Both the position numbers and the translations under genes were made by a program. A model generated the notes under the pieces. The model saw only the letters and a list, made by a program, of their open reading frames with translations. It did no database searches and was not told where the DNA came from. From the sequence record NC_028899.1: 64,000 nt of DNA. One strand, given 5' to 3'. Below are positions 10,261 to 25,503 of the stretch, piece after piece (position 1 is the stretch's first letter; each line of letters starts with the position of its first letter).

Positions 10261-10326
10261 GATTTAGCGACAATAATATTTTACATATACTACAGTTACT
10301 ATAGACTAGGACTGTAGAGGTGTGAA

Positions 10327-11244: not shown

Positions 11245-11291
11245 AAAGGGATAGCTCGGGAAGATATGGTGACACCATATACGGAGGTAAC

Positions 11292-11828
11292 ATGAAACGA
11301 AAAGTTCACCAATCGGTCGAATGGAATCGTATCGTTCCCAACACCATCACGGCGGAGGATCTTCTTCTTCCCGAGCTTCTCACTCAAGATCATCTGTTCG
11401 AACAGGGTCTTGTTTTCACGATCGATGCTGAAGGTCGAGATCACCGCCATTCTAATGTTTACGATTTCGTGAACAAAAAGGCCGGCCGTTCGATCAAGAT
11501 CGAAGGCATCGAGCGTCTTAATCGCACGATGTGGGACTTCTGCAACCTGATCGTGAATGGCCCGATCAATAAACCGTTGCCCTTCTCGTGCCATCTGTTT
11601 ATTGCAGGCCAAAATGACGCAAGCTTTCCGGATCACACCGATCCGGACGGCGTATTCCTCTATGTCGTCGAAGGCACGAAAACGATGATCGTAGAAGGAA
11701 CGACGTATACGTTGGAAAAAGATCAAACGCTCTACATTCCGCCTGGCACGGTTCATCGTGCTGAGAACCGTGAAGCGTCCGTGATGCTTTCAATCGGTTT
11801 CGATGACTTCTTGGTGGAGAAATTCTAA
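11292..11828 (+). CDS. JmjC/cupin-type Fe(II)/2OG oxygenase (Cupin_4/ROX-like)
   Basis: GGAGGT RBS before ATG 11292; FPDHTDPDGVFLYVVEGTK and LYIPPGTVH give an HxD...H triad plus the 2OG-binding Lys. Confidence 0.75.
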   Translation: MKRKVHQSVEWNRIVPNTITAEDLLLPELLTQDHLFEQGLVFTIDAEGRDHRHSNVYDFVNKKAGRSIKIEGIERLNRTMWDFCNLIVNGPINKPLPFSCHLFIAGQNDASFPDHTDPDGVFLYVVEGTKTMIVEGTTYTLEKDQTLYIPPGTVHRAENREASVMLSIGFDDFLVEKF

Positions 11829-11829
11829 A

Positions 11830-12894
11830 ATGCATCGCACGGTATATATCAAAACAACGGAAGCGTGCAATCTGAACTGCAAGCATTGCTTTACCGGGGG
11901 CAGTCAACCGAAGCGTGAATTCCTCGACGTGGAAAGGACGATCGACTGGGTTCGACGTCTGTTTGAACACTTGAGTTTCGAGGATCACACGCATTTCGAA
12001 CTCCACGGCGGCGAGCCGTTCCTCTTGCCTGTGAAACAACTGAAGGAACTGACCAAGGGTATTCGTACCTGGGGTCCGGTCAAGCACTCGATTGGTGCGA
12101 CCACGAATCTGGTTTACAAGTTGACGGATGAACTGCTCTGGTTCATCCGCAACGATCTGGAAAGCATCGGTACGTCCTGGGATCCGGATATCCGGTTCAA
12201 GAACGACAAGCAATACCAGCTGTGGTGGGAGAACATGAAGACCATCACGAAACATTGTGATGTCACGTTGAACGTGAGCGTCTCCCGCGCTTTGGTGAAC
12301 ATGAACATCAGCGACCTGCTGATGTATCTGCGCGACACCGGTGCTTCGAAGGTTCAGTTCGAACGCATCACCCAGAACGGCAACGCGAAGAAGAACCTCA
12401 CCCTATTCCCGTCGAATGCAGAAATCAACGACTGGTATCTGCGCCTGCACAACGCGTCCGAGAAGCTGAATGCTCGCGACTGGTTCTACAATGCAGCACT
12501 GGAAGACGTGTATGCAAAATTCGAAAATGGCAATGCTTGCTCTGGCACGTTCTGTCGGAATTGCGAAGAGACCATCTTTACGCTCAACGCGGACGGCAGC
12601 ATTGGGGGTTGCGCCAATTCGGCGCCAGAAGAATCCTTTGGACACATCGACATGGACATCGGAGAACTCTTCGATACCACCGGACGAATCGATAACATTG
12701 TTAAAGAGCGCGTGCGCAACGAGCAGTGTTACGTTTGCCCTGTGGCCGCTCATTGCGGTGGTGATTGCCACCGACTGGCTTGGGAAGGCGATGTGTGTGC
12801 AGCACCCCGGCAGCTGATGAAGAAGCTCGCTGGCTTGCCGATCGACACTCCCGAAGTCCAACCGAAACGTATCATTCCCATCATGGCGGTTTAA
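11830..12894 (+). CDS. Radical SAM/SPASM protein 1
   Basis: CNLNCKHC, HGGEP, and C-terminal SPASM-like Cys array (CSGTFC..C, GC, CYVC..AAHCGGDC, C). Confidence 0.92.
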   Translation: MHRTVYIKTTEACNLNCKHCFTGGSQPKREFLDVERTIDWVRRLFEHLSFEDHTHFELHGGEPFLLPVKQLKELTKGIRTWGPVKHSIGATTNLVYKLTDELLWFIRNDLESIGTSWDPDIRFKNDKQYQLWWENMKTITKHCDVTLNVSVSRALVNMNISDLLMYLRDTGASKVQFERITQNGNAKKNLTLFPSNAEINDWYLRLHNASEKLNARDWFYNAALEDVYAKFENGNACSGTFCRNCEETIFTLNADGSIGGCANSAPEESFGHIDMDIGELFDTTGRIDNIVKERVRNEQCYVCPVAAHCGGDCHRLAWEGDVCAAPRQLMKKLAGLPIDTPEVQPKRIIPIMAV

Positions 12895-12900
12895 GGAAAT

Positions 12901-13461
12901 ATGAGTACATATCGCACAGACGTCGATGCCGTGGCCCAGGCATACGTACGGAACAACGTGAACGGGGCAATCAACCCCTATCGCTCGGATTGGGCGCCGG
13001 GCTATGTGAACATGGGTCTGGTGGGTTGGATCTCGCAAGATCCGAATCCGGCTCATCCGTCGTGGAACGGCGAATTGAGCACCAACGGCAATACCATGAT
13101 GACCAATCAGGTACGCCAGGCCATGATCGATCTGGGCGTGTATTACGCATGGATTGCCAAGGGCCACTACGGTCTGCAAACGTCGAACCAGAGCGGCGCT
13201 CAGCCTTTGCAGTATGAAGGCTATGGCTACTTCGTGTTCAACGGCGCAGCACCTGGTGCAGGCGATCATTCGAACCGGGTGTATAGCGACCTGCAAACTG
13301 CTGGTACCATGAACGGCACGATCCAATATGCCCAGCTGACGAACTTCTACCAGTTCTGCTGGAACATCATCTGGAACCGTAAAGACGACCTGCTGGTCGA
13401 TCTGACGGTATGCCATTCGTCCTGCCATTCGTCCTGCCACGGCAGCCGTGGTCGTCGTTAA
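12901..13461 (+). CDS. Putative substrate/precursor protein with a C-terminal (CHSS)n repeat
   Basis: AAGGA RBS; 186 aa ending VCHSSCHSSCHGSRGRR; immediately follows rSAM 1. Substrate role is inferred. Confidence 0.6.
   Translation: MSTYRTDVDAVAQAYVRNNVNGAINPYRSDWAPGYVNMGLVGWISQDPNPAHPSWNGELSTNGNTMMTNQVRQAMIDLGVYYAWIAKGHYGLQTSNQSGAQPLQYEGYGYFVFNGAAPGAGDHSNRVYSDLQTAGTMNGTIQYAQLTNFYQFCWNIIWNRKDDLLVDLTVCHSSCHSSCHGSRGRR
13411..13440 (+). repeat. 12-bp tandem repeat (TGCCATTCGTCC)x2 plus TGCCAC encoding CHSS-CHSS-CH
   Basis: Read directly: 13411-13422 and 13423-13434 are identical; 13435-13440 is a partial third unit. Confidence 0.95.
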
Positions 13462-13470
13462 GGAGTCGTC

Positions 13471-14541
13471 ATGATCAATCTTTTCGATCGAGTCTATCTC
13501 CGCCACGACAACGTGCTTGCGCGGGGTGAAGGTCAGCTGAAACTGATCATCAGCCCGAAGGTGAAGGAAGTCACTTACGTGATGGATCCGCTGCAACAGC
13601 AACAGGCGGGCATCATGGGCGTTTACGACTGCCTGTCCGATTGCGATCACTACATGGGTGGTCGCGATGCGCTCTGGCTGTCGCTCGCAACCAAGAAGGC
13701 CAAGGTCGTCATCATCGCAGATCGTTTCGTGGCGGCCGAGCTGCTGATCCAGTACTGGAAGGCAATCTTCAAGGAAACCACGGCCGACAGTCTGTACGCT
13801 CTGTACCAGATCGCGGTGAACAACGAGAACCTGCATACGCACCGTCCGACGGAAAAGCGTACGCACCTGGCGTCTCCCAATTCGACCGATGGTCACATCG
13901 AGAAGCTGACGGCTGAAGAATTCCAGACGCTGTACGACAAGCTGTCGCCGGCTATGCTGGACTTCTCGTCGGATGCGGCTCTGAAGTCGATTCCGTTCGA
14001 ATATCTGCTCATGTCGTATCTGGCAGATCCGTCCGAAGACCTCGTGAAGCGCGTCTTCTTCCAGAAGCTCGACGCAATCATGCGTTCGAACATCGTCGCG
14101 AAGCTGATCGGTGGGCGTGAAGAACTCATGTTCGAGACGCACAACTACTACCTGCTGGAAAACGGCGGGCAAGAGCACCTGATCACCGATCCGGTGGCGC
14201 ACCTGACGAACAGTCCGATCCTCTCGTGGGTGATGGACGAAGCGTTCGTGTATGGCAACGAAGACGAGATCCTGAAGAAGTATTCGCTCGATCAGATCAA
14301 GTTCTTCTTCGAACAGATCAAGCGTCTCGTACTCGAAGACGAATCGATCCTCGTGGCCATCGACTGCGTGAAGAACAAGCAGTACGCAAAGCTGATCGAA
14401 TACGACATCGGTGACCATCAAGGCAACTTCTTCGGCACCGGTGCGTTCGTGAACAAGATCAACGGCCTGTTGGTCTCGTACATGTATCAGCTGAAACGTC
14501 TGAACATGATGGACAAGCTCGCGCTGTACGAACTGAAGTAA
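13471..14541 (+). CDS. Hypothetical protein, 356 aa, within the rSAM cluster
   Basis: AGGAG RBS, strong codon bias, no recognised motif. Confidence 0.8.
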   Translation: MINLFDRVYLRHDNVLARGEGQLKLIISPKVKEVTYVMDPLQQQQAGIMGVYDCLSDCDHYMGGRDALWLSLATKKAKVVIIADRFVAAELLIQYWKAIFKETTADSLYALYQIAVNNENLHTHRPTEKRTHLASPNSTDGHIEKLTAEEFQTLYDKLSPAMLDFSSDAALKSIPFEYLLMSYLADPSEDLVKRVFFQKLDAIMRSNIVAKLIGGREELMFETHNYYLLENGGQEHLITDPVAHLTNSPILSWVMDEAFVYGNEDEILKKYSLDQIKFFFEQIKRLVLEDESILVAIDCVKNKQYAKLIEYDIGDHQGNFFGTGAFVNKINGLLVSYMYQLKRLNMMDKLALYELK

Positions 14542-14550
14542 ATCCATGTG

Positions 14551-14589
14551 CTGCTCGGTACCTTCGGGTACCGAGTGGTCTCTTTTTTT
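14551..14589 (+). terminator. Intrinsic terminator with cUUCGg loop and U-tract
   Basis: CTCGGTACC-TTCG-GGTACCGAG followed by TGGTCTCTTTTTTT. Confidence 0.85.
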
Positions 14590-14636
14590 CTATTGGTCAC
14601 ACTTCTGTTTTGACCTATCCCACTGAGGAAAACGAA

Positions 14637-15683
14637 ATGAGTGAAGAGAAGAAACATCCGTTGAATTTCGGCAATATGGAAATGAAGCCCGAACTCGAAC
14701 CCGCTCTCGAGATCGCGCGTGCGCCGATCGAAGATGTGCCGAACGATCCCTTGCTCGAAAATCTGGGCGCGCCGATCGATTATCAGTCGCCGAGAGAAAT
14801 CGTTCAAGCTGAAAACGTCGGCGATGGCTGGGTCGCAGAACTCCCGCCCGAGCAGCAGACCCCGGTCCAGCAGCCCGGCATCCCCGAAGACAAGCTGCGC
14901 GAAACGGTTGTACCGTTTCCGACCGACATGATCCGCCAGTACTTCAGCGACAAGGATCTGTTCTTCATCGCGAACTACAGCGAGTCGAAGCTCAAGGGCG
15001 CGCAGTTCCTGACGTACCTGTCGAACATCAACATCCCGTCGGATGTGAAGTTCAATACGCCGATCGGATACGCCGAGTATGCCGAGATCATGAAGGCGTA
15101 CATGGAATCGATCAACATCGTCAACTGCGCTGGTCTGCACGTCATGGCAGCTGAAATGCTGCTCGTCGCCAAGGGCCTGCCGTACGATCGTTCGCCGTAC
15201 GCTCTGCCGATCGACGAGAAGGTGATCCTCATGTTCATCGAGGAACACTACGAGATGGTGCAAAAGTGGCTGCACTTCATCGACTCGACGCAAGTCTACG
15301 CGCTGCGTTCGATCAAGGCGCTGAATGATCACTTCAAGCCGGAAGAACATTTCCCGGTGGTGGAAGATCGCTGCTTCGTCGGCGCGAACATCGCCCAGCT
15401 GTTCCGCATCCCGCAGTTCATCGCCCTGTACTTCGTGATCGAAAACGCGACGTACAAGTTGTCGTACTTCCGAGATCAGTTCGAAGAATACATGTTCAAG
15501 AACGAAACGCTCGCGAAGTACTTCCAGTCGCCGAACAACTTCGCTGCGCTGTATTTCATGCACTACGCGTCGGGCCTGTTCAAGCCGGAAGACATCAACC
15601 ACGGTCTGTTCAAGATCGGCGTGTTCGATCCGAACAGCGAGGCTTTCGTGAAGGAAGCATATGCCGCAACCATTCAAATCTGA
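14637..15683 (+). CDS. Hypothetical protein, 348 aa, within the rSAM cluster
   Basis: GAGGA RBS before ATG 14637; acidic Pro-rich N-terminus and aromatic-rich helical body. Confidence 0.8.
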   Translation: MSEEKKHPLNFGNMEMKPELEPALEIARAPIEDVPNDPLLENLGAPIDYQSPREIVQAENVGDGWVAELPPEQQTPVQQPGIPEDKLRETVVPFPTDMIRQYFSDKDLFFIANYSESKLKGAQFLTYLSNINIPSDVKFNTPIGYAEYAEIMKAYMESINIVNCAGLHVMAAEMLLVAKGLPYDRSPYALPIDEKVILMFIEEHYEMVQKWLHFIDSTQVYALRSIKALNDHFKPEEHFPVVEDRCFVGANIAQLFRIPQFIALYFVIENATYKLSYFRDQFEEYMFKNETLAKYFQSPNNFAALYFMHYASGLFKPEDINHGLFKIGVFDPNSEAFVKEAYAATIQI

Positions 15684-16764
15684 TTCGAACTCTTCGATGA
15701 CGATGGGTGAGGCATCCCAATACCACCTGAGTTTGAACTTGGAGTGGTTGTCGGGTTGCCAATTCAGCTGTAAAGGCTGTCACGTCAATAAGGTAACGGG
15801 CGTTCCATACACCATGACGGAGTATGTCAAGCTTAATACTTGGCTCTCCAGCATGACGTATGAAGGGAATTACCTGCCGACGATTGTCTTCCTCGGCCCG
15901 GTGGATTTCCTGGTGGCAGACAACACCTATCGTCTTCTGAAGAACGAACTTACGTGGGGCACATTCTCACAGTTCAAGCGCCTGTCTCTGCAGACGACGT
16001 TCCTGAACATGGATCGTGCTTACGAGATCGCTCAGGTTCTGAAGCAGCATTATCGGAACCTGGAACTCGAACTCAACTTCATCGTTGAGCCGGAACAGAT
16101 CAACAACGAAAAGTATCTGAATCGCATTAAGGAGAACCGCGATCGGATGCTGGATTATCTGCAGTGGGATAAGCACATCGCGTCTTTCGCCATCATGAAC
16201 GTCTACGAGTACGATCGGGTGAAGAAGAACGACGTGAAAGCAATCCTCTCGGATTACCAGGCAATGCACGCCAAGATCAAAGAGAAGTTCGATTCCACCA
16301 TCGACTTCAATTTCTCGATGACCCGTAATCCCTGGTGGGATAACGAAGACATCAAGGAAGCCGTGCAGAGCGTGAGTCGAATCTTCGACGGTGGCGTCGA
16401 TCATGAGTTCAACCAGACCATCCGATTCTCCTTCGGCAAGCTGGAAGACTCAGCGATCGAAAAGCATTACAACTGGCATCAGGGCAATCTGTATGTGTCG
16501 CCCATGATTTACGAACGCATCGCTTCTTTCAATCCGAAACTGCGTGTTCCTTTGGGACCGTTGGGTGGCGTGAGAGAAACTGAGGAGTTCGAACGCCGGT
16601 TGCTGCTGGATCAGTATCATAACTCCGAAACCAAAACCGAGTGCAATCGTTGCCGATATCAAGCCTCTTGTATCGAACGCAATGTCCTGACGTTTATGGA
16701 CATGCACGAGATCAAGGACTGCATCATCGCCCGTAAAGCTCTCGATGCCATCAACGTCATTTGA
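15661..16764 (+). CDS. Divergent radical SAM protein 2
   Basis: GCQFSCKGCH retains CxxxCxxC; GGE motif replaced by LGPVDF; reduced C-terminal CxxCx5C...C. Start could be 15697 or 15703. Confidence 0.75.
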   Translation: MPQPFKSDSNSSMTMGEASQYHLSLNLEWLSGCQFSCKGCHVNKVTGVPYTMTEYVKLNTWLSSMTYEGNYLPTIVFLGPVDFLVADNTYRLLKNELTWGTFSQFKRLSLQTTFLNMDRAYEIAQVLKQHYRNLELELNFIVEPEQINNEKYLNRIKENRDRMLDYLQWDKHIASFAIMNVYEYDRVKKNDVKAILSDYQAMHAKIKEKFDSTIDFNFSMTRNPWWDNEDIKEAVQSVSRIFDGGVDHEFNQTIRFSFGKLEDSAIEKHYNWHQGNLYVSPMIYERIASFNPKLRVPLGPLGGVRETEEFERRLLLDQYHNSETKTECNRCRYQASCIERNVLTFMDMHEIKDCIIARKALDAINVI

Positions 16765-16768
16765 GACG

Positions 16769-16798
16769 CATATGGACTGGCCGCGGCCAGTCCATATG
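16769..16798. repeat. Perfect 30-bp palindrome between rSAM 2 and rSAM 3
   Basis: CATATGGACTGGCCGCGGCCAGTCCATATG equals its own reverse complement. Confidence 0.95.
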
Positions 16799-16814
16799 TA
16801 CATGCGAGGTAATT

Positions 16815-17837
16815 ATGAACAACGAAATTCTGAATCAGATGCTCTCGTCCAAAGTCCAGGACAGCACGGAAATCGAACACCATCTGTTCGAGTACTGCAA
16901 CCTGAACTGTTCGTTCTGCGGTCAGGACCATGACTCGAAGGTCGGCATGGAATCGATCATCGAGAAAGCCCACAAGACCGTGGACTTCATCTTCCGTTCG
17001 AAGAAGAAGAAACACACCATCAACGTGATGGGTGGTGAGATCTTCAACGACAAGGTCGAGACGAATGTCTTTCTCGACTACTACAAGTTCTACGAAATCA
17101 TCGAAAAAGTCTGTCGCGATCTGAAGGTGGAATTCCAGATCAACTGGGTCACGAACCTGATCTTCAAAGAGAATCGTGAGATGGTGCATTGGCTCATGGA
17201 GAAAACCAAAGCCCATGCCAAGATCTCCACCTCGTATGACTTTGCGGGTCGTGGTCTGGACCTGAATCGTACTCTGACGTTCAGGTATAACCTGAGTCTC
17301 TACAAAGAGTACATCGGTGTCGTCGGCTTCGTTCTGACGAAACCGTCGATTCGTAAACTCCTGAAGGATTCGGATTCGTTCTTCCAGAATGAACTGTATC
17401 CGAACTTCCCGTTGTATTTCGATTGGTACGTGCCGGAGAAATCTTCCGAAAAGATGATGCCGTCGGAGCAAGAGATGCTCGACGCGCTGCTTTATGTCGC
17501 GGAGAAATATCCGAACATCGAACCGGTCAAATCCATGCTGGAGAACGAGCACAACAAGATGACGTGCTTCAGCTTGAACAAGACGACTATCCTGCCCGAC
17601 GGTAAGGAAGTCACATGTCGCTATCTTGAATACGACAAAGAAAAATTTATAAACGATATCGATTATTCGAGCAATGCAAACATTGTCCAATCCCACCTCG
17701 ATCGAAACGAATGCTATTCGTGTAATCACTTTGACCGCTGCCAGTTTCGGTGTTTTGTGCAAGCTGACTGGGCGGAACTCGAACGGCTGCCCACCTGTTT
17801 CATCCGAACCTTCTTCGACAAGACTGTCGGGAGGTAA
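16815..17837 (+). CDS. Radical SAM/SPASM protein 3
   Basis: GAGGT RBS; CNLNCSFC, MGGEIF, C-terminal C...C...CYSC...DRCQFRC...C. Confidence 0.9.
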   Translation: MNNEILNQMLSSKVQDSTEIEHHLFEYCNLNCSFCGQDHDSKVGMESIIEKAHKTVDFIFRSKKKKHTINVMGGEIFNDKVETNVFLDYYKFYEIIEKVCRDLKVEFQINWVTNLIFKENREMVHWLMEKTKAHAKISTSYDFAGRGLDLNRTLTFRYNLSLYKEYIGVVGFVLTKPSIRKLLKDSDSFFQNELYPNFPLYFDWYVPEKSSEKMMPSEQEMLDALLYVAEKYPNIEPVKSMLENEHNKMTCFSLNKTTILPDGKEVTCRYLEYDKEKFINDIDYSSNANIVQSHLDRNECYSCNHFDRCQFRCFVQADWAELERLPTCFIRTFFDKTVGR

Positions 17838-17839
17838 AT

Positions 17840-18493
17840 GTGCCGGAATTCATTCCGCTGAAAGGTAAAGTATTTGGTCGTTGGACAGTTATCGACGACG
17901 GAACAAGATCAAAAAACGGCCATATGTGGAAATGCCGCTGCGAATGCGGTAATACTGGTGTAGTTAACGGGAAAGACCTTCGCAGAGGCCATTCGCAAAG
18001 CTGTGGGTGCATTATTGCCGAAATAATGAAAACACAGAAGTTCGCGGCCACTCACGGAATGCATACTTTTCCAGAACACCGAATCTGGCTAAATATGAGG
18101 TATCGGTGTCGTAGTCCGAAATGTTCGGCCTGGAAAGATTACGGAGGCCGTGGAATCAAAGTCTGCGAGGAATGGGACAAGTCTTTTGAAGCTTTCATCA
18201 GAGACATGGGACGACGACCTTCTGAACAGCATTCTATCGACCGCATCGATAATGACGGGAATTATGAACCCGGTAATTGTCGATGGGCTACTCTGCAAGA
18301 GCAGGCCAAAAATCGTCGTACGACGGTAATGATCGAATACAAAGGCGAAACTCGATCGATGTCAGAATGGGCACGTCTTTACGGTATTTCCAAATCGATG
18401 CTTAGCAAGCGTCTTTCCGCGGGCCTTCCTTTTGAATTGGCGCTTCTTAAACCAAGCATCCGCCAGCCTCGTCTTAACAAAATCACTGACTAA
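17840..18493 (+). CDS. HNH homing endonuclease
   Basis: GTG start after GGAGGT; FGRWTV, CRCECG, SCGC, YGGRGIKVC, SIDRIDNDGNYEPGNCRWAT. Confidence 0.92.
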   Translation: MPEFIPLKGKVFGRWTVIDDGTRSKNGHMWKCRCECGNTGVVNGKDLRRGHSQSCGCIIAEIMKTQKFAATHGMHTFPEHRIWLNMRYRCRSPKCSAWKDYGGRGIKVCEEWDKSFEAFIRDMGRRPSEQHSIDRIDNDGNYEPGNCRWATLQEQAKNRRTTVMIEYKGETRSMSEWARLYGISKSMLSKRLSAGLPFELALLKPSIRQPRLNKITD

Positions 18494-18501
18494 ACTGCAT
18501 C

Positions 18502-19038
18502 ATGAAAATCATTCTTATCGCAGCTGAAGCAGCGAACAAGGTCATCGGCAACGACGGTAAGATGCCGTGGCATATTCCCGAAGATCTTCAGGGTTTCAAA
18601 AATACCACGATGGGTTCTGCCATCATCATGGGTCGTAAGACCTGGGACTCCTTCGGTGGTCGTCCTCTGCCTGGTCGCAAGAACATCATCGTCTCGCGTC
18701 AGCTCGATGCAGGTTGGACAGCACCGGAGGGCGCATTCCGCGTTCACAGTTTTAAATCGGCAATCAAAAGCCTGATTGCGGCCGGTTACGATCACTGTTT
18801 CGTGATTGGTGGTGAACAGCTGTATCGAGCAGCCATGCCGTGGGCTTCGATGATCATGCTCACGAAGCTCTACAAGTCCTACGAAGGCGATGCGCGCTTT
18901 CCGGACATCAGCCCGCTCGAATGGCGCATGACGGCCTCGGCGCAATTTTTCGAGGCTTCCCAACCGTACTCGGTACAGACTTACTATCCGATCAGCGAAC
19001 GCGACGTCGTTAAGTGGGTCGACCTCATCAAGGACTGA
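18502..19038 (+). CDS. folA: Dihydrofolate reductase
   Basis: VIGNDGKMPWHIPEDLQGFK, IMGRKTW, PLPGRKNIIVSR, VIGGEQLY, GDARFP. Confidence 0.93.
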   Translation: MKIILIAAEAANKVIGNDGKMPWHIPEDLQGFKNTTMGSAIIMGRKTWDSFGGRPLPGRKNIIVSRQLDAGWTAPEGAFRVHSFKSAIKSLIAAGYDHCFVIGGEQLYRAAMPWASMIMLTKLYKSYEGDARFPDISPLEWRMTASAQFFEASQPYSVQTYYPISERDVVKWVDLIKD

Positions 19039-19039
19039 T

Positions 19040-19618
19040 ATGGACATCATCCTGACTGCTTTGATTTACAACGACAACACCATCGGCGCGAAGGGTGAGC
19101 GTCCCGACTTTGTCGGACAGCATGCTTCGTACATTAGCGATCTCAGACATCGCTTTGTGCTGATCGGACGTAAAACGTTCGAGGCCATGGGCAAGCCGAA
19201 ACTCGGTACGCGTACGTTTGTCTTTTCGCGTAACCACGAATACCAGTCCGAAGGCGTAACGACGATCCTCGATCTGGCGGCTTTCATCAAGATCGCAGCT
19301 GAAGCTGGTGAATCGGAAGTCGTCGTATTCGGTGGCGCACAGACGTTCCATGCGACGATGCCTTGGGCGGACAAACTGTGTATTACCTGGGTTCATCGGA
19401 ATCGCGAAGGCGAGATGAAGTTCCCTCAGTTTCCGCCGCATTTCCACTGCCCTGCGTGGGATACCCAGGAATATGACGTCGATGGTGTCTTGCTCGAATC
19501 CATGACGTATTACCGGTGGAACGACGTACCGTTCCCGAGCGAAACTCTGGAAGACCAAGCAATGCTGGTCGCCAAGGACTATGCTCGTCGCCTTACCGGC
19601 AAACGACCGCTTATCTGA
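19040..19618 (+). CDS. Divergent DHFR-fold protein (possible pseudo-enzyme)
   Basis: TIG, LIGRKTF, VFSR, VFGGAQTF, GEMKFP are retained; the PW..P.D substrate loop is replaced by PDFVGQH. Confidence 0.75.
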   Translation: MDIILTALIYNDNTIGAKGERPDFVGQHASYISDLRHRFVLIGRKTFEAMGKPKLGTRTFVFSRNHEYQSEGVTTILDLAAFIKIAAEAGESEVVVFGGAQTFHATMPWADKLCITWVHRNREGEMKFPQFPPHFHCPAWDTQEYDVDGVLLESMTYYRWNDVPFPSETLEDQAMLVAKDYARRLTGKRPLI

Positions 19619-19626
19619 AATTCATT

Positions 19627-20703
19627 ATGAGCCATCCTTCACTGATCATCAAACCGACTGAAGCGTGCAATTTTAAATGCACCTTCTGTTCGTCGACGGA
19701 TATCCAAGGCGATTCTCCTAACCTCGACGTCGAGTACATCAAGTTGTACCTGGAGCGTTTCCCGAAGACTCCGACGATCATCGTGAATGGTGGGGATCCG
19801 CTCATGATGAAACCCGAGTACTATTGGGAGATCATCAAGATCATTGAGAGTATGGGCTTGAAGACCACGCTCTCATTTACAAGCAATCTGTGGGCTTTCT
19901 ACAAGAAGCCTGAGATGTGGGTGGACTTGTTTCGCCATCCGCTTGTAGGGGTCTCTACGAGCTTCCAATACGGTAATTCACGGCTTAAGGGCGACCTCAC
20001 TCCGTTTACCGAGGAAGAGTTCTGGAAAGTGTCCGATCTGATGCTGGAAAAGGTCGGTTATCGCCCACCTTTCATTGCAGTCATTACAAAAGAAAATGAG
20101 GATACCAGTATCCAGACTGTCGAGCTTGCTAAACGCATGGGTGTTGTCTGTAAGCTCAACTATGCAATGGCCTCCGGACCCAAGACAACGTTCAAAGGCA
20201 TTACGATCGGCAACGCCGATTCCACCTACGTCCTTGCGGATATCTACGAAAAGTATATCAAGATCGCCGAAGCGGGACTCGCGCCGTGGGAACATAACAC
20301 GCAAGTCATGATGAAACGACTGGCAGGTCAGCAAAATCAGATCTGTCCTCAGGCTCGTCATTGTGATGAGGGGATTCGCTCTTTGCAGCCTGGTGGAAAG
20401 TACTATAGCTGCGGAGCATTCGGAGACGACGGATTATATCCTATCGACTTCGCTAATGAGATGGCAGGCGGCTTTGAAACTCCACTTCGCCATCAACCGG
20501 AATTGCAGTCACTCAAGTTCTCATGCTTCGAGTGCCCCATGTTTGAAATCTGCAACGGGTGCCGTAAGACCACGCACGATCTTAAACGTCTTGACCTGGT
20601 GGAAGTCCACTGCTCCAAGATGAAGACGCTGGCTCCGAAAATCATCGATCTGAATGGGCTTACCGGAAAAGTATATCCGACGCCCTATGTCAAGGAGACA
20701 TAA
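19627..20703 (+). CDS. Radical SAM/SPASM protein 4
   Basis: CNFKCTFC, NGGDP, SPASM-like ICP...HC...SCG...CFECPMFEICNGC...C. Confidence 0.92.
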   Translation: MSHPSLIIKPTEACNFKCTFCSSTDIQGDSPNLDVEYIKLYLERFPKTPTIIVNGGDPLMMKPEYYWEIIKIIESMGLKTTLSFTSNLWAFYKKPEMWVDLFRHPLVGVSTSFQYGNSRLKGDLTPFTEEEFWKVSDLMLEKVGYRPPFIAVITKENEDTSIQTVELAKRMGVVCKLNYAMASGPKTTFKGITIGNADSTYVLADIYEKYIKIAEAGLAPWEHNTQVMMKRLAGQQNQICPQARHCDEGIRSLQPGGKYYSCGAFGDDGLYPIDFANEMAGGFETPLRHQPELQSLKFSCFECPMFEICNGCRKTTHDLKRLDLVEVHCSKMKTLAPKIIDLNGLTGKVYPTPYVKET

Positions 20704-21248
20704 TGGAACTGCTCCAACCTTGGAAAACGAGTATCGGGAAAATGTCGGTTCTCGATTTGCTGGATATCGACTCGATGCTCAACGAAGTCATGCAGCACCC
20801 GAAAGTCATGGAGAACCCGGTCAACGGGTCTCTACGCATCAAGTACGAGGAGTTTCCGATCTGCTCGGAAGCTCTGGAGAAGGTTCTCAAGCCTATCGTC
20901 GAAGCGTACATCATCAACGTCGGCGGCCGACCGGCTAAAAACCTAGCCTGGAGCAGTTGGTTTCACATCTGCTTGCATGGTAACGGATTGATTCCGCACT
21001 ACCATGACGAGGCATTGAATTCGGTTCTGTATTTTACCACGTCGAAGGCTAATCTGGTGCTACGCGACCCTCTGGCTTCTCAAGCTCGACAGTGGCCGCA
21101 AGAAATGCGAAAGGTGATGCACGCCGACCAACAGTTTCATCCAGTCAAGGGCGATCTCCTGGTGTTTCCGGGATATGTCGACCATTATGTCATGGCAGAT
21201 GAACCGGACTTCCGGATTTCCATGGCAACGGACTGGATCTTCCGATAG
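20703..21248 (+). CDS. Fe(II)/2OG oxygenase, TIGR02466-like
   Basis: TAATG coupling; PHYH, SVLYF, LVLRDP, P.KGDLLVFPGYVDHYV, RIS. Confidence 0.8.
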   Translation: MELLQPWKTSIGKMSVLDLLDIDSMLNEVMQHPKVMENPVNGSLRIKYEEFPICSEALEKVLKPIVEAYIINVGGRPAKNLAWSSWFHICLHGNGLIPHYHDEALNSVLYFTTSKANLVLRDPLASQARQWPQEMRKVMHADQQFHPVKGDLLVFPGYVDHYVMADEPDFRISMATDWIFR

Positions 21249-21255
21249 GAAAGTT

Positions 21256-22197
21256 ATGCTCGCGAATGAATCTGGGATTCTGAACGTTTCTCTGAATCCA
21301 ACGTACTATTGTAATTTCCGGTGCGATTTCTGTTACCTGACGAAGAAGCAACTCAATACCCAGAACTACTTGCCGATCGAAGGTATTCGCAAGAAGCTCA
21401 AGGAGATCCTGGATTCGGGTCACCAGATCGGCCATGTGGATTTGTACGGCGGTGAGATCATGCTCCTGCCCAACGAGTACATCAAGGCCATCGGTGATCT
21501 GATGGAAGAATTCAAGGTCGAGGATTGTGAGATCATCACGAACCTCTCGGCCTACAAGAAAGACATCATCGAAGACCCGCGTTTCGGTATCTCGGTGAGT
21601 TACGATTTTGAGTATCGCGCACAGCCCGAACACGTGTGGCAGAACATGCTCAAGATCCCACGGGCCTTTACTGTCCTGACGCTCGGTATTCCCGAGATCG
21701 TCAAGATGGATCCGGCTGAGTTGGTCGAACGAATCAACTTGCTGGAGAACTGCAAAGCCTGGGAGATCAAGCCTTACAGCAAGAACCAGGCTAACCAGCT
21801 GGCTGTGACGGATCTGGAATTTGAAGAATTCGTCAAGAAGATCATCGAGTATCCGAACAAGAACTTCGAGTTCCTGAACGAGACGAAGTTGCGAACCATT
21901 AAGTTCCGCGACTACAACGCGTTCTCGGATAACCACGTCTACATCACACCCAAGGGTCATTTCGGTGTGTTGGAGTTCGATGAGAACGATCGCGAGTTTT
22001 TCCTCGAACTGAAGACCATGGACGATTACGTCAATTGGACTCAGGAAGAGAAGATTCGTGTGATGTCCAATCCGACCTGCGGTGGCTGCGAATACATGGG
22101 TAAGTGTGCGTCCGAACATTTGCGTGATGTCCAATCCATGGATAACAGCTGCAATGGCTTTTACAATTTGATTCAGTGGTACGAGGCAAGGCCATGA
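21256..22197 (+). CDS. Radical SAM protein 5 with C-terminal Cys cluster
   Basis: CNFRCDFC, YGGEIM, C-terminal CGGCEYMGKC...SC. Confidence 0.9.
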   Translation: MLANESGILNVSLNPTYYCNFRCDFCYLTKKQLNTQNYLPIEGIRKKLKEILDSGHQIGHVDLYGGEIMLLPNEYIKAIGDLMEEFKVEDCEIITNLSAYKKDIIEDPRFGISVSYDFEYRAQPEHVWQNMLKIPRAFTVLTLGIPEIVKMDPAELVERINLLENCKAWEIKPYSKNQANQLAVTDLEFEEFVKKIIEYPNKNFEFLNETKLRTIKFRDYNAFSDNHVYITPKGHFGVLEFDENDREFFLELKTMDDYVNWTQEEKIRVMSNPTCGGCEYMGKCASEHLRDVQSMDNSCNGFYNLIQWYEARP

Positions 22198-22754
22198 TCG
22201 AATACAAACACCCGTGGATCACCCCCATCGGACAGACGTCTTTCTTCACGGCTGTCCAGCATGAGAAGCTGCTTGACGAAGTCATGCAGCATCCCGAAAT
22301 CATGGCAGAGATCAAGGTTGGGTCTTTGCGGATCTCGGATCGCAAAAAAGAATTCCCCAAACTGGCGTCGTTTATCGAAAACGTACTCAAGCCCCATGCG
22401 AAGTACTTCATCCAGGACTTCTACGACCATCGGCCTGAAGATCTGAGGTGGTCGGCGTGGGTGCATGCCTGCATCAATGGCGCTGGGCTCGTTCCCCATT
22501 ACCACATGGGCGACGAGCATATGGCGTCGATCCTGTATCTCACCGAGTCCAAAGCGAATTTGGTCTTGCGCAATCCCATGGCGAACATGATGCGTAACTG
22601 GCCTCAGGAAATCCTGAAAGGTCACTACGCTGACGTTCAGGTGAATCCGCGCGTAGGCGACTTCGTGATCTTCCCGACCTTCATTGATCATTACGTGATG
22701 GCTGCAGAACCGGACTTCCGCATCTCAATCGCAATCGACTGGTGTTTCGAATGA
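22194..22754 (+). CDS. Fe(II)/2OG oxygenase, TIGR02466-like, paralog of 20703-21248
   Basis: ATGA overlap; PHYH, ASILYL, LVLRNP, P.VGDFVIFPTFIDHYV, EPDFRISIAIDW. Confidence 0.8.
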   Translation: MIEYKHPWITPIGQTSFFTAVQHEKLLDEVMQHPEIMAEIKVGSLRISDRKKEFPKLASFIENVLKPHAKYFIQDFYDHRPEDLRWSAWVHACINGAGLVPHYHMGDEHMASILYLTESKANLVLRNPMANMMRNWPQEILKGHYADVQVNPRVGDFVIFPTFIDHYVMAAEPDFRISIAIDWCFE

Positions 22755-23443
22755 CTTTCAAGCCTCTCACTCAAAAAGACCTTGACGACCTCAAGGATTT
22801 GACGAAACTCTATCCCGTGTCCATGCACGAGATTCGTCCGAATATCGATCGCAAGCCGTTCAATCCGGATGAATTCCTCGGTGATTATTTCACCAAGGGG
22901 TTTTACGCCTTCGATGCGACGACGATCATGAAGGACATCGAGATCCAACGCTTCGAGCCGGTGAAGGTGGTTCACGAGGACAACTGCTTCCATGCAGAAG
23001 GTCACGAGTTCCACTCCGACTACATGCGTCTGTCGATCGAACAGTTGAAGCGCGACATTCGTCGCATCTTGCACATGTTCCCGCACAAGTCCGCGTTCGA
23101 CTTTTACGCTGAAGCCGTGAACGACCACGTGCAGCACTGGCACAGCGACGCGCAATACGCTCTGCCCGGTCAGAACGCAACCATCAACTGCTTTTTCGAC
23201 AGCACGTCGGAAGACATCGGCGGGCGCTTCGACATGGCATCGTACTCGGCCGAGATCATCGGCACGAAGAACCTGCCCGGCGTTTTCACGTCGATCTATC
23301 CGCAGCGTTACGAAATTCTCATCTTCAACCAGAATCGAAACTTCCTGCATAAAGCAGTGAAGAACAAGGTTCCGCGTCGAATGGTTTCGTTCGCATGCGA
23401 GTTCGACGACATCAACCCCATTCTCCCGAACTGGCAAGCATGA
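22751..23443 (+). CDS. Fe(II)/2OG oxygenase (HxD...H type)
   Basis: ATGA overlap; HWHSD, NCFFD...GGRF, FNQ..NFLHKA, RRM. Confidence 0.72.
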   Translation: MTFKPLTQKDLDDLKDLTKLYPVSMHEIRPNIDRKPFNPDEFLGDYFTKGFYAFDATTIMKDIEIQRFEPVKVVHEDNCFHAEGHEFHSDYMRLSIEQLKRDIRRILHMFPHKSAFDFYAEAVNDHVQHWHSDAQYALPGQNATINCFFDSTSEDIGGRFDMASYSAEIIGTKNLPGVFTSIYPQRYEILIFNQNRNFLHKAVKNKVPRRMVSFACEFDDINPILPNWQA

Positions 23444-24021
23444 TCGATACTGGCGAATTCATCACCGACTATCTGACTAAAGGTCATTTCCGATTCGACG
23501 CTTCGGAGGTCCTCTCCAAGTTCGATATCGCGGCCTTTGGGACGATCAAGAAAACGGACGCAACATTCAGCACGGAAGACCCGGAAGAGCGCTACGAGGC
23601 TTATACGCCCGCGCAAAGGGTACTCCTGAAGCAATTGTCGGCGGACATCTCCGAAACGTATTTCAAAGAGCTCAACCACGAGCTTCGTTTCAACGACATG
23701 TGGGCGTCCGCGAACCCCTACACCTATACCTGGCATAACGACACGCTACGTTGTTGGCCGGGTTTCAATAGCAATGTGAATTGCTATTTCGACGACATGG
23801 ATCCTTCGATCGGCGGATCGCTGCAAATGCATCCGACCGTGGAAGACTACGATTCGATCATGGACGACAGTCCGCTGATCACGGAAACTTTCCCGCGCAA
23901 GTTCGACATCATCGTCATCAACCAGAACAGCAACTGGCTGCATCGTGTCCGTCATACGGAATACAAGCGAACCATGCTTGCCTTCGCAGCCGGCTTCTTC
24001 GATTTCAATCCGGTTATCTGA
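23440..24021 (+). CDS. Fe(II)/2OG oxygenase, paralog of 22751-23443
   Basis: ATGA overlap; TWHND, NCYFD...GGSL, INQ..NWLHRV, KRT. Confidence 0.72.
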   Translation: MIDTGEFITDYLTKGHFRFDASEVLSKFDIAAFGTIKKTDATFSTEDPEERYEAYTPAQRVLLKQLSADISETYFKELNHELRFNDMWASANPYTYTWHNDTLRCWPGFNSNVNCYFDDMDPSIGGSLQMHPTVEDYDSIMDDSPLITETFPRKFDIIVINQNSNWLHRVRHTEYKRTMLAFAAGFFDFNPVI

Positions 24022-24023
24022 CC

Positions 24024-24443
24024 ATGAAAGAATGGAAGATGTGGCAACAGGTCTACAATGACCTCGTTCAGGATCACAGCGATGCTCGACACAAACACCA
24101 GTTCATCATCAGCAACACGCCCGTCGAAGATGCTATCGAATATGTCACTATCCAGGCAGCAGTGGGACGCTATCCGGGAAAAAGTCGTATCGTTGCTATC
24201 ATCTATGCGCGATGTATTGCGGATCATTACGGAGAGGATTTCTTTGAAGTTCTCGACGATCCTGACCTCCTTCATGGTCAAGATGAGTTCTTCGTGCCGT
24301 ACTCCGAAGACAAAGAAACCTACGATGCGATCCTTGCCCGTCTCCAAGACATCCCTGATTGGATTAAGGGGGGTTGGGCACCGAAGACGGTTGAGTACTT
24401 CCACCTGGAGTGTACTGAAGAGGGCGTAAAGTCGATCAATTAG
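24024..24443 (+). CDS. Hypothetical acidic protein, 139 aa, last gene of the rSAM cluster
   Basis: ATG 2 nt after the previous stop; C-terminal part of track ORF 23781..24443. Confidence 0.7.
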   Translation: MKEWKMWQQVYNDLVQDHSDARHKHQFIISNTPVEDAIEYVTIQAAVGRYPGKSRIVAIIYARCIADHYGEDFFEVLDDPDLLHGQDEFFVPYSEDKETYDAILARLQDIPDWIKGGWAPKTVEYFHLECTEEGVKSIN

Positions 24444-24540
24444 TTCAAATTTTATAGAACTGGTCGGCTGTTCAGAAAAATATAGTGTCGTTTTGACACC
24501 TGGAGAGTCCGTGGCTTAATTCTTTTAAGTAAGGTACTCT

Positions 24541-25170
24541 ATGGGTTTTGATTTAACAAATTTGAATGCATCGCTGGCTACTTTGACGCAGTGGGTCAAG
24601 ACCGGCCTGGCGAAAAAAGCGGATGCTGCCGCAACAACGTCAGCCATTAACTCAATCAACCAGAAACTCTCCAGTGGCATCGTTGGTGCTTTGCCTGGTC
24701 TGACCATCGAGCTTGGCCATTCCAGCCAGGCCAACGGCGGCAGAGGTATCGATAAAGGAAGTTACTACCAGCTGGATTTCAATGTTGGTACGAACTACTA
24801 TAACGGCATCGAGGCGGTCTCGAACCCTGACGGAACGCTCACTCTGCCCAATGGGTACTATCTTGTAATCGGTAGCGCGAAAGTCGTCGCCGATAGTCAA
24901 GATACGTTCCAGATTCCGCAGCAAGTTACGCTTGCAGCAGGGCAGAACTATGATTTTCCGGGCATATACCAGTATGCTGTACAGGCACTTCCTCAACCGC
25001 CACAGTCTTCTGGTTCTGAAACCGGGGCAATCGGCTTCATCCAGATTGGCGGAGCCATGCCATTTGCTTCGAGTGATCCTGTGTGGCTTGGTTTTTCTAA
25101 AGTCACTGGTTCCGTGAATTCGGTAATCTTGCGACTGCAAGGTTACATCAGCTTCGTTAAATTTGGCTGA
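24541..25170 (+). CDS. Short tail fibre/adhesin with possible C1q/BclA-like head
   Basis: N-terminal MGFDLTNLNA helix shared with the next gene; QLDF...NPDGTLTLPNGYYLV resembles gC1q/BclA-CTD strands. Confidence 0.5.
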   Translation: MGFDLTNLNASLATLTQWVKTGLAKKADAAATTSAINSINQKLSSGIVGALPGLTIELGHSSQANGGRGIDKGSYYQLDFNVGTNYYNGIEAVSNPDGTLTLPNGYYLVIGSAKVVADSQDTFQIPQQVTLAAGQNYDFPGIYQYAVQALPQPPQSSGSETGAIGFIQIGGAMPFASSDPVWLGFSKVTGSVNSVILRLQGYISFVKFG

Positions 25171-25181
25171 GGATTGAGACT

Positions 25182-25490: not shown

Positions 25491-25503
25491 AACGCAGACG
25501 ACT

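Follow-up and report, generated by a model that had tools for sequence, protein, structure and literature searches.

The closest described system is the HXS system, in which HxsA, a protein with His-x-Ser repeats, is matured by the radical SAM (rSAM) enzymes HxsB/C, with a +8 Da change on an S-H-R-S-S motif (PMC13128918). HXS acts on DNA entry, its repeats bind DNA, and it is reported almost only in Pseudomonadota cells, not phages. Modification of larger substrates also has a precedent, as an rSAM/SPASM enzyme installs thioethers on a full-size protein (PMC13692751). Here, a conserved set of radical SAM and oxygenase enzymes is considered in a jumbo phage of the plant-wilt bacterium Ralstonia, surrounding one protein whose last 16 residues barely vary in hundreds of phages and some predatory bacteria. 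No paper describing this system was found.

The window, i.e., the whole stretch of 64,000 nucleotides that was analysed, is 100% identical to Ralstonia phage RSF1 (NC_028899), and its positions 11292-24443 (record 73292-86443) form one co-oriented block. All genes from ORF069 to ORF085 are on the + strand, and most neighbouring pairs are separated by gaps of 1-9 nt or overlap by 1-4 nt. The features of the block and of the preceding fibre module are as follows.

7055..9127 (+), ORF066, tail/fibre-like virion protein at the start of the fibre module that precedes the cluster
9139..10260 (+), ORF067, virion structural / tail-fibre-like protein
11292..11828 (+), ORF069, cupin / JmjC-type Fe(II) oxygenase-like protein
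11830..12894 (+), ORF070, radical SAM/SPASM enzyme (family rSAM070)
12901..13461 (+), ORF071, CH-tail protein, the proposed substrate and functional product
13411..13458 (+), coding sequence of the C-terminal tail of ORF071 (Cys171 to Arg186)
13471..14541 (+), ORF072, conserved protein of unknown fold and function (family o072)
14550..14589 (+), terminator-like hairpin (13-bp stem plus T run) between ORF072 and ORF073
14610..15683 (+), ORF073, conserved protein of unknown fold (family o073; conserved core about residues 73-346)
15661..16764 (+), ORF074, divergent radical-SAM-like protein (family rSAM074)
16815..17837 (+), ORF075, radical SAM/SPASM enzyme (family rSAM075)
19624..20703 (+), ORF079, radical SAM/SPASM enzyme (family rSAM079), the most conserved member
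20703..21248 (+), ORF080, PF13759-type putative 2OG-Fe(II) oxygenase
21253..22197 (+), ORF081, radical SAM enzyme with a short C-terminal Cys motif (family rSAM081), start taken at the ATG 5 nt after ORF080
22194..22754 (+), ORF082, PF13759-type putative 2OG-Fe(II) oxygenase
22751..23443 (+), ORF083, 2OG-oxygenase-like protein (paralogue of ORF084)
23440..24021 (+), ORF084, 2OG-oxygenase-like protein
24024..24443 (+), ORF085, conserved small protein of unknown function (family o085), which RefSeq starts at 24018

According to the motif analysis, five proteins carry CX3CX2C at residues 13-33 (ORF070, 074, 075, 079, and 081), and each has a C-terminal CX2CX5C(X2-3C) motif of the SPASM/twitch type. 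For ORF070 and ORF075 the motifs are CX3CX2C at residues 13 and 28, respectively, and CX2CX5CX3C at residue 300 in both; ORF074 has CX3CX2C at residue 33 and CX2CX5C at residue 328, and ORF081 has CX3CX2C and CX2CX5C. PF04055 passes its gathering score for ORF070, ORF079 (46.6 bits), and ORF081 (35.5 bits), is below it for ORF075 (21.1 bits), and is absent for ORF074. The SPASM model TIGR04085, however, passes its cut-off only for ORF070. As for ORF074, it has no Pfam hit, aligns to rSAM081 in hhalign at 91% probability, and its family is expanded to 5-6 paralogues in a second cluster architecture.

The best named relatives of these enzymes are peptide- and protein-modifying rSAM/SPASM enzymes (PapB, DynA, YhhB, anSME, DarE, and HxsB/C). 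For ORF070 they are PapB, DynA, YhhB, and anSME, with a weak match of the SPASM region to anSME structures; for ORF075 the best NCBIfam hit is HxsB at 5e-6; and the N-terminal part of ORF081 resembles viperin-type rSAM proteins. All hits to named families, however, are far below equivalog cut-offs, so reaction types cannot be transferred. The position of CX3CX2C at residues 13-33 leaves no room for an N-terminal recognition domain.

Among the five Fe(II) oxygenase-type proteins, ORF069 matches Cupin_2 (PF07883, 49.6 bits) and JmjC_2 (PF08007, 30.4 bits), both above cut-off, and has H115-x-D...H155. ORF080 and ORF082 match PF13759 above the cut-off of 27 (31.8 and 33.9 bits, respectively) and have H99-x-H101 and H102-x-H104. 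In contrast, ORF083 and ORF084 have no Pfam hit themselves, but both have H-x-D...H (H131-x-D...H200 in ORF083, which matches phrog_19592) and are homologous to a PF13640 protein in a related locus (L007). For ORF084 this BLASTP match has an E-value of 2e-14, with H-x-D and the distal His aligned.

ORF072, ORF073, and ORF085 gave no match in searches of family and PDB sequence collections. An AF2 model of ORF073 (pLDDT 89.4) also has no PDB match. The roughly 370-aa ORF that follows the o073 homologue in other loci belongs to the same family as ORF072 (profile E = 5e-20). The hairpin between ORF072 and ORF073 is the strongest terminator-like site in 9000-26500, although this is based on a consensus scan only.

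These results confirm the gene content given in the earlier note, with several corrections. The 217-aa ORF at 17840-18493 is an HNH homing endonuclease rather than an orphan, and ORF085 corresponds to the frame 24018/24024-24443. The two DHFR-fold genes, the HNH gene, and the flanking GIY-YIG gene are lineage-specific insertions and do not belong to the conserved system.

This last point bears on the reading of the cluster as a DNA or nucleotide hypermodification pathway, which the note had named as a weaker alternative and which would be linked to folate metabolism, with ORF071 being incidental. Such a reading draws on the two DHFR-fold genes inside the RSF1 cluster and on the fact that some phage thymidine hypermodification pathways use radical SAM enzymes (PMC8989533). 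DHFR homologues, however, are absent from all 99 other loci compared and are specific to the RSF1 group, while no kinase, glycosyltransferase, or nucleotide-modifying family was found in the cluster by the family searches. Since the nearest enzyme relatives are peptide and protein maturases and the CH-tail gene is the constant partner, this explanation appears very unlikely.

ORF071 is annotated only as hypothetical and ends in CHSSCHSSCHGSRGRR, i.e., three Cys-His-x-Ser units followed by Arg-Gly-Arg-Arg. The three-fold Cys-His spacing occurs once in the 64 kb window, against 0.01 expected by chance. AF2 predicts a confident body of about 170 residues (pLDDT 89.4 for the model) and a disordered 16-residue tail with values below 57. 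No PDB fold match and no Pfam, NCBIfam, or PADLOC hit were obtained. The family comprises about 420 clusters at 50% identity. Bodies fall to 25-27% identity where the enzymes keep 50-74%, whereas the last 16 residues are nearly invariant. In 241 sequences, Cys and His are 100% conserved at three positions each, as is Arg at three positions, and Ser after His-x is found in 97%, 76% (plus 20% Asn), and 95%. The identical peptide is encoded by 24 different DNA versions elsewhere with a mean nucleotide identity of 0.71, so selection acts on the protein.

The CH-tail gene sits in the same neighbourhood in 99 other loci, with the order tail-fibre gene, cupin, rSAM070, CH-tail gene, ORF073/ORF072 families, rSAM075, rSAM079, rSAM081, and ORF085. 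A cupin homologue lies just upstream of rSAM070 in 55 of 99 loci, rSAM070 lies directly upstream of the CH-tail gene in 51 of 73, and o073 lies directly downstream in 59 of 82. Among 35 loci with at least 6 kb downstream, rSAM075 is present in 35, rSAM070 in 32, rSAM079 in 31, rSAM081 in 29, and o085 in 21. The reverse comparison was anchored on rSAM079, which has 50-74% identity to orthologues in distant loci, a mean column identity of 59%, and a relative encoded in 338 IMG/VR stretches. Of 80 loci anchored on this enzyme, 66 carry a CH-tail gene (68 of 70 on the same strand), and all 15 cultured-phage records with an rSAM079 homologue have one. The system also occurs in Bdellovibrionota genomes.

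Thus, the central inference of the note, that the rSAM and oxygenase genes form a RiPP-like system whose substrate is the CHSS-tailed protein, possibly a virion part, is supported and survives in both directions the note's own test of whether homologous clusters routinely lack this protein. The substrate, however, is a folded 186-aa protein rather than a short peptide, and no mass-spectrometric or structural evidence of a covalent modification exists for any family member.

The virion idea gains independent support from Agrobacterium phage Atu_ph07, whose gp170 is a homologue with the same tail type and is present in the published virion proteome. Its mass of 31.89 kDa matches the published table, and it was detected with 8 unique peptides and 35% coverage, being most abundant in the top gel band, whereas gp165, 168, 169, 171, and 172 are not listed. 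The gel buffer as described, however, lists no reducing agent, and the high-mass form of gp170 could be a disulfide-linked or SDS-resistant oligomer rather than an enzymatic cross-link.

As for the link to fibres, in 37 of 57 loci a protein with the phrog_19602/22593 tail-fibre C-terminal domain ends within 4 kb upstream, and Atu_ph07 gp176, which is such a protein, is also in the virion proteome. In RSF1, ORF066 matches phrog_2163 (virion structural protein) and phrog_13857 (tail protein) over its N-terminal 176 residues, and its homologues precede the cluster in two loci (L005 and L085). ORF067 matches phrog_2163 at 6.8e-83, phrog_13857, and the tail fibre protein phrog_8147, and its RefSeq product is "virion structural protein".

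These data make it unlikely that the 16 C-terminal residues are the precursor of a released small product, such as a bioactive peptide or a peptide-derived cofactor like PQQ or mycofactocin, with the body being a discarded leader or scaffold. An invariant core with a variable N-terminal part does seem to be the pattern of peptide-derived cofactors (PqqA and MftA), sets of several rSAM enzymes plus oxygenases resemble heavily tailored RiPP pathways, and some relatives add a B12-rSAM or a methyltransferase. No conserved protease or exporter, however, is found in the clusters, and the body is a conserved, confidently folded domain of its own family. The presence of the Atu_ph07 homologue in virions and the position of the cluster in the fibre module also speak against it.

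It is also doubtful that the matured protein works like HxsA, with its basic His-x-Ser tail engaging DNA at the cell envelope, for example, to exclude competing phages, to assist or protect the phage's own genome entry, or to counter HXS-type defences. This reading rests on both proteins having three His-x-Ser units followed by a basic end and being matured by several rSAM enzymes, and on weak HxsB/HxsC-like hits for ORF075, 079, and 081. Those hits, however, are about 25-31 bits against cut-offs of 268-370, no HxsA or HxsD model matches, and ORF071 shows no peptidoglycan-binding domain in the Pfam scan. In addition, the system occurs in chromosomes of predatory bacteria next to fibre-like genes.

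A somewhat stronger, though still unlikely, possibility is that the tail is not the modification site but a conserved handle, either a docking (follower-type) peptide that recruits the enzymes or a Cys/His metal- or iron-sulfur-binding site. The enzymes would then modify the variable body of ORF071 or other proteins, such as the adjacent tail fibres, whose genes are conserved neighbours. Indeed, in classical RiPPs the conserved part is the recognition peptide and the variable part is the core, which is the reverse of what is proposed here, and Cys and His at i, i+4, i+8 would suit metal binding. A natural tail variant (locus L197) replaces two Cys and one His in the middle of the tail, yet keeps the total length of 16 residues, the outer Cys-His and His-x-Ser-Arg-Gly-Arg-Arg, and the full enzyme set. 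Therefore, no enzyme can be assigned to a site, and some enzymes may act elsewhere. In contrast, the body is predicted to be compactly folded (pLDDT around 95) and has almost no invariant residues that could serve as targets, while the invariant tail positions are exactly the chemically reactive residues and the x positions vary. The related HXS system also modifies the His-x-Ser motif itself.

Based on these comparisons, the preferred reading, to which a probability of roughly 55% is assigned, is that the cluster is a dedicated, RiPP-like protein-maturation system. Four core radical SAM/SPASM-type enzymes (rSAM070, 075, 079, and 081; in RSF1 also rSAM074) and Fe(II) oxygenases (cupin/JmjC-like ORF069, PF13759, and PF13640-like proteins) are inferred to act on the tail of ORF071, probably helped by ORF072, ORF073, and ORF085. 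Lacking an N-terminal recognition domain, the enzymes would have to read the tail directly, which would explain why it is frozen while the body evolves fast. The chemistry is only inferred, and likely includes radical cross-links of the kind made by related enzymes (His-to-C-beta cyclophanes within His-x-Ser/Asn units, and/or Cys thioethers or Cys oxidation) and hydroxylations of Arg, His, or Ser. Under this reading the matured protein then joins the virion as part of the tail-fibre module, where its variable body would serve as an adhesin-like or fibre-associated part, and its tail as a conserved, chemically reinforced anchoring or metal-binding element.

The region is 100% identical to Ralstonia phage RSF1 (Chiangmaivirus, 222,888 bp; window base 1 corresponds to record base 62001). 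All genes from ORF069 to ORF085 are located on the + strand, and most of their junctions are gaps of 1-9 nt or overlaps of 1-4 nt. The features referred to below are as follows.

10327-11244 (+), GIY-YIG nuclease gene between the fibre-like ORF067 and the cupin gene
11292-24443 (+), ORF069-ORF085, the enzyme cluster
13411-13434 (+), the first two Cys-His-Ser-Ser units of ORF071, encoded by a perfect 12-nt tandem DNA repeat (TGCCATTCGTCC twice)
14550-14589, terminator-like hairpin after ORF072
17840-18493 (+), 217-aa ORF from a GTG start, matching HNH endonuclease PHROGs
18502-19618 (+), two adjacent DHFR-fold genes, ORF077 and ORF078
24541-25170 and 25182-25490 (+), ORF086 and ORF087, just after the cluster

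Five proteins (ORF070, ORF074, ORF075, ORF079, and ORF081) carry the radical SAM (rSAM) motif CX3CX2C at residues 13-33. PF04055 passes its gathering score for ORF070 (30.5), ORF079 (46.6), and ORF081 (35.5), while the score for ORF075 (21.1) is below it and ORF074, which gives no hit, is tied to the others by profile comparison (hhalign). As for the C-terminal Cys motif, the full CX2CX5CX3C is found in ORF070 and ORF075, CX2CX5CX2C in ORF079, and only CX2CX5C in ORF074 and ORF081. The SPASM model TIGR04085 passes its cut-off only for ORF070 (28.8 against 27), with ORF079 scoring 18.1.

Among the oxygenase-type proteins, ORF069 is a cupin with a JmjC_2 match (PF07883, 49.6 bits against 27.2; PF08007, 30.4 bits against 22, the latter over a short stretch) and has H115-x-D117 and H155. 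ORF080 and ORF082 match PF13759 (31.8 and 33.9 bits, respectively, against a cut-off of 27) and contain H-x-H plus a distal His, although TIGR02466 gives only 21-24 bits against 62.5. ORF083 and ORF084 are paralogues (phrog_19592) with H-x-D...H that have no direct Pfam hit. They are homologous to a PF13640 protein in a related locus (L007, a Halobacteriovoraceae contig), to which ORF084 aligns at 2e-14 with the H-x-D and the distal His conserved.

ORF071 ends in CHSSCHSSCHGSRGRR, an arrangement that is unique in the window against 0.01 expected by chance. The gene content described in the earlier note is confirmed, with several corrections. The ORF at 17840-18493 matches HNH endonuclease PHROGs over residues 4-192 (phrog_374, 1e-69), whereas RefSeq annotates only its last 165 nt (18329-18493); it is absent at this place in RSL2 and S13, so it looks like a homing-endonuclease insertion that splits the cluster. 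ORF085 lies in the frame ending at 24443, and several annotated starts look doubtful. The RefSeq starts of ORF079 (19615) and ORF085 (24018) fall on CTG codons, and ATG codons at 19624 and 24024 are more plausible. ORF081 probably starts at the ATG at 21253, which gives the 313-314 residues seen in RSL2 and S13, rather than at 21337. ORF086 and ORF087 share a nearly identical N-terminal segment of about 30 residues and Ala/Thr-rich fibre-like sequence; they have no family match and may be alternative fibre or whisker proteins.

The cluster is syntenic in RSL2, S13, RsoM3USA, and the FLC phages. These phages lack the GIY-YIG gene and the HNH gene, so both appear to be RSF1-specific insertions. 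A protein search with ORF071 returned more than 160 metagenomic proteins of about 170-260 residues, whose bodies diverge down to undetectable similarity. A full-library profile search found 420 clusters at 50% identity. Over 241 sequences in the same register, counting from the C-terminus, Cys is 100% conserved at -16, -12, and -8, and His at -15, -11, and -7. Ser reaches 97% at -13, 76% (plus 20% Asn) at -9, and 95% at -5, while Arg is 100% conserved at -4, -2, and -1, and Gly reaches 94% at -3. Rare variants replace the middle of the tail, but keep its length, the first Cys-His-x-Ser, and the final His-x-Ser-Arg-Gly-Arg-Arg. Although the first two units in RSF1 are encoded by the tandem repeat, the same peptide uses many different codons in other phages. 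The identical peptide is encoded by 24 different DNA versions with mean nucleotide identity 0.71, and selection is therefore on the protein, not on a DNA or RNA element or recent transfer.

A degenerate DNA pattern for the window's own tail found 91 stretches in IMG/VR and 13 among 185,579 species-representative genomes, 8 of the latter being Bdellovibrionota MAGs. ORFs were called in these loci and in loci fetched by protein identity, and then compared with the RSF1 proteins. Across 99 loci outside the RSF1 group, a homologue of ORF070 (family rSAM070) lies directly upstream of the gene carrying the Cys-His tail (CH-tail gene) in 51 of 73, and a homologue of ORF073 lies directly downstream in 59 of 82. 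In 9 further loci the upstream gene is another CH-tail gene. Among the 35 loci with at least 6 kb downstream, rSAM075 (the family of ORF075) is present in 35, rSAM070 and ORF073 in 32 each, rSAM079 in 31, rSAM081 in 29, and ORF085 in 21. The roughly 370-residue ORF that follows the ORF073 homologue belongs to the ORF072 family (profile E = 5e-20). These loci hold 1-8 CX3CX2C proteins, typically 3-5.

The survey also bears on the alternative that the cluster is a phage DNA hypermodification pathway. Only the two DHFR-fold genes are nucleotide-related, and DHFR homologues are absent from 99 of 99 other loci; within the cluster they are found only in the RSF1 group. The second of them, ORF078, matches PF00186 only over residues 37-138 and may not be a working DHFR. 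No other nucleotide-modifying family was found in the family scans of the cluster proteins, and the DHFRs were rejected as part of the system.

The reverse comparison gives a similar picture. An alignment of rSAM079 homologues (mean column identity 59%) retrieved 338 IMG/VR stretches. Of the best 80 loci, 66 contain a CH-tail ORF end within 10 kb, and 68 of 70 such ends are on the same strand; most of the 14 exceptions are cut short upstream. All 15 cultured-phage records with an rSAM079 homologue, including Pseudomonas phage pPa_SNUABM_DT01, Agrobacterium phage Atu_ph07, and Sinorhizobium phage Phosso, have a CH-tail gene next to an rSAM070 homologue. Homologous clusters therefore do not routinely lack the protein with the CHSS tail; the earlier note had named such a lack as evidence that would refute its interpretation.

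A second cluster architecture was observed in nine loci, where two tandem CH-tail genes of about 125 residues lie directly after a very large (up to 3611-aa) fibre-like protein and are followed by five to six paralogues of the rSAM074 family and then the usual rSAM075, rSAM079, and rSAM081 families. In L007 (350 kb) the cluster lies among ordinary cellular genes (ribosomal protein S20, acyl-CoA dehydrogenase), next to a Peptidase_S74 fibre-type protein, and includes an extra B12-binding radical SAM methyltransferase-like gene.

With a 28-sequence alignment, AlphaFold2 predicts for ORF071 a confident alpha/beta body (mean pLDDT 89.4, pTM 0.84) and a tail that is disordered from about residue 171. 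Foldseek finds no solved structure (best E = 0.6), and in BFVD it finds only uncharacterised phage proteins, including the Atu_ph07 homologue. ORF073 also gives a confident model with no PDB match. Profile searches of the ORF072, ORF073, and ORF085 families against PDB sequences and all-against-all hhalign gave nothing, suggesting no relationship to the rSAM enzymes or to each other, and ORF072 and ORF073 were rejected as paralogues. No curated model (NCBIfam June 2026, Pfam, PHROGs annotation, PADLOC) names the CH-tail, ORF072, ORF073, or ORF085 families, and PADLOC gives only generic viperin-type hits to the rSAM N-termini.

Between RSF1 and the distant locus L005, the enzymes rSAM070, rSAM075, and rSAM079 keep 62-74% identity, while ORF071 keeps 27% overall with an unchanged tail. 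The body evolves like a host-interaction surface, and the tail like an active site. The nearest named relatives of the rSAM enzymes are peptide and protein maturases (PapB, DynA, YhhB, DarE, anSME, and HxsB/C), all far below equivalog cut-offs. The only solved-structure hits are anSME for the SPASM part of ORF070 and viperin-type proteins for the N-terminus of ORF081. Because CX3CX2C starts at residues 13-33, these enzymes have no N-terminal recognition domain, which fits direct reading of an invariant target, as anSME does with sulfatases.

In RSF1 the cluster follows ORF066 and ORF067, which match tail and virion-structural PHROGs. In diverse loci the gene before the cupin carries a C-terminal domain matching phrog_19602 (tail fiber protein) and phrog_22593, and a profile of that domain finds such a protein ending within 4 kb upstream, on the same strand, in 37 of 57 loci. 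The published Atu_ph07 virion proteome (PMC6102473, Table S5) lists gp170, the CH-tail homologue, whose computed mass of 31.89 kDa equals the tabulated value, with 8 unique peptides and 35% coverage. It also lists the fibre-domain protein gp176, but not the enzymes gp165, gp168, and gp171, the cupin gp172, or gp169. gp170 appears in bands 1-9 and is most abundant in band 1, the top band, far above its monomer size. However, the sample buffer as described lists no reducing agent, and the high apparent mass may therefore reflect disulfides or an SDS-resistant oligomer rather than enzymatic cross-links. S13, a close relative with the same cluster, uses flagella as its receptor.

We propose a protein-level, RiPP-like maturation, in which the rSAM and oxygenase enzymes, helped by ORF072, ORF073, and ORF085, modify the exposed tail of ORF071, and the mature protein then becomes a fibre-module virion component. 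The chemistry is inferred only from relatives and may include His-to-C-beta cyclophanes in the His-x-Ser/Asn units, Cys thioethers or Cys oxidation, and hydroxylation by the JmjC-like cupin and the 2OG oxygenases. Precedents exist for both elements: rSAM maturation of a His-x-Ser repeat protein gives +8 Da on an S-H-R-S-S motif (PMC13128918), and rSAM/SPASM thioether formation has been shown on a full-size protein (PMC13692751). An attempt to map enzymes to tail positions through a natural variant failed, however. Locus L197, in which the two inner Cys and one His are replaced by a Tyr/Val/Ala/Pro/Pro stretch of the same length, keeps every enzyme family, and the variant (L197/L198) is accompanied by four tandem ORF084-like oxygenase genes and the full rSAM set; a DNA-pattern scan for it in IMG/VR found nothing. 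Sites and enzymes cannot be matched, and a role of the tail as a handle or metal site remains a serious rival. The strong terminator-like hairpin after ORF072 suggests that ORF069-ORF072 may form a first transcription unit, although this rests on a consensus scan only.

In comparison with known systems, the cluster works most like the HXS antiphage system (PMC13128918) and like protein-directed rSAM/SPASM maturation. HXS likewise has a protein-sized substrate, HxsA, with tandem His-x-Ser units in a basic context, several radical SAM enzymes encoded beside it, small accessory proteins of unknown fold, and a covalent change mapped to a His-x-Ser motif. However, neither ORF071 nor three distant family members gave any NCBIfam hit, including the HxsA model TIGR03979, even at E up to 0.1. 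The best HxsB and HxsC hits are 25.8 bits against a cut-off of 370 and 31.4 bits against 267.9, respectively, and no cluster protein hits HxsD. Here each unit is preceded by an invariant Cys and sits at the extreme C-terminus, 4-8 rSAM enzymes plus oxygenases are present instead of two rSAM enzymes, and no peptidoglycan-binding domain was found. The system is encoded by phages and Bdellovibrionota in a tail-fibre module, not as a cellular periplasmic defence protein.

Three-residue cyclophane (triceptide) maturases acting on aromatic-x-x motifs, including His-containing ones such as those of HaaB and HtkB (PMC11499958), are rSAM/SPASM enzymes that cross-link His to the beta-carbon of a residue two positions on, and the tail offers three His-x-Ser/Asn units. 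The hits to the cyclophane-forming families YhhB, FxsB, GrrM, XyeB, and AmcB are weak and far below family cut-offs, the substrate is a folded protein rather than a short peptide with a leader, and no cross-link has been observed. Ranthipeptide/sactipeptide maturases make Cys thioethers, and CrpC-CrpA (PMC13692751) shows that this can happen on a Cys-rich protein encoded next to the enzyme. PapB is the top NCBIfam hit of ORF070, but with 51 bits against a cut-off of 340, and the tail has only three Cys, each paired with His, and several different enzymes and oxygenases beside it.

As for anSME (TIGR03942), it is a compact rSAM/SPASM enzyme without a recognition domain that acts directly on a short motif of a full-size protein. 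It is the best solved-structure match of ORF070 (only E = 0.001, over the SPASM region) and among the best NCBIfam hits for rSAM070 members (42-50 bits against a cut-off of 349). The last Cys of the tail lies four residues before an Arg, which resembles what is probably the sulfatase motif, Cys/Ser-x-Pro/Ala-x-Arg. However, Gly, not Pro or Ala, sits at the middle position, variant tails lack that Cys, and no sulfatase domain or gene was found in the cluster.

The cluster also does not satisfy the criteria of a classical RiPP biosynthetic cluster, since the precursor is a 186-aa protein, predicted to be folded, with a variable body and an invariant C-terminus, the rSAM enzymes have no N-terminal RRE, and no protease or transporter family was found in the window cluster or is conserved in relatives. 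In proteusin-type pathways (polytheonamides), several radical SAM enzymes, a 2OG oxygenase, and methyltransferases probably work on one precursor with a long N-terminal part; here, however, there is no nitrile-hydratase-like or Nif11-like leader, the enzyme families are different, and the product seems to stay a protein in the virion. Finally, a fast-evolving protein of about 190 residues, encoded after a tail-fibre gene and, for the Atu_ph07 homologue, found in the virion, recalls tip adhesins and assembly proteins such as T2-type gp38 and Tfa, but no sequence or fold match to any such family was found, and none of those appears to need radical SAM enzymes. Genome papers on these phages merely list the rSAM, cupin, and oxygenase genes, and we found no paper describing the system, reporting the tail sequence, or linking radical SAM enzymes to phage fibres or virion proteins.

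Radical SAM maturases are known for small peptides, a few enzymes, and, very recently, the HXS defence effector, but they are not known to build parts of virus particles. A more far-reaching possibility, which we consider less likely than not, is that large phages and predatory Bdellovibrionota share a previously unrecognised class of post-translationally armed envelope-attack proteins. In these a hypervariable receptor-side domain would carry an invariant 16-residue C-terminal module, which a dedicated battery of 4-8 radical SAM enzymes and several oxygenases converts into a multiply cross-linked, possibly metal-binding or covalently anchoring structure on the fibre. This would be the first enzymatically cross-linked virion component made by radical chemistry.

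A whole battery of such enzymes, three protein families with no known fold, and a substrate-like protein with an almost frozen tail are conserved in hundreds of uncultured large phages, and they also occur in several cultured jumbo phages used or proposed for crop biocontrol (RSF1, RSL2, the FLC phages, S13, and Atu_ph07) and in predatory bacteria. If the tail is modified, this opens new radical enzymology on a defined 16-residue target, gives a new principle for how fibres or adhesins are stabilised or anchored, and links phage and Bdellovibrionota attack machinery.
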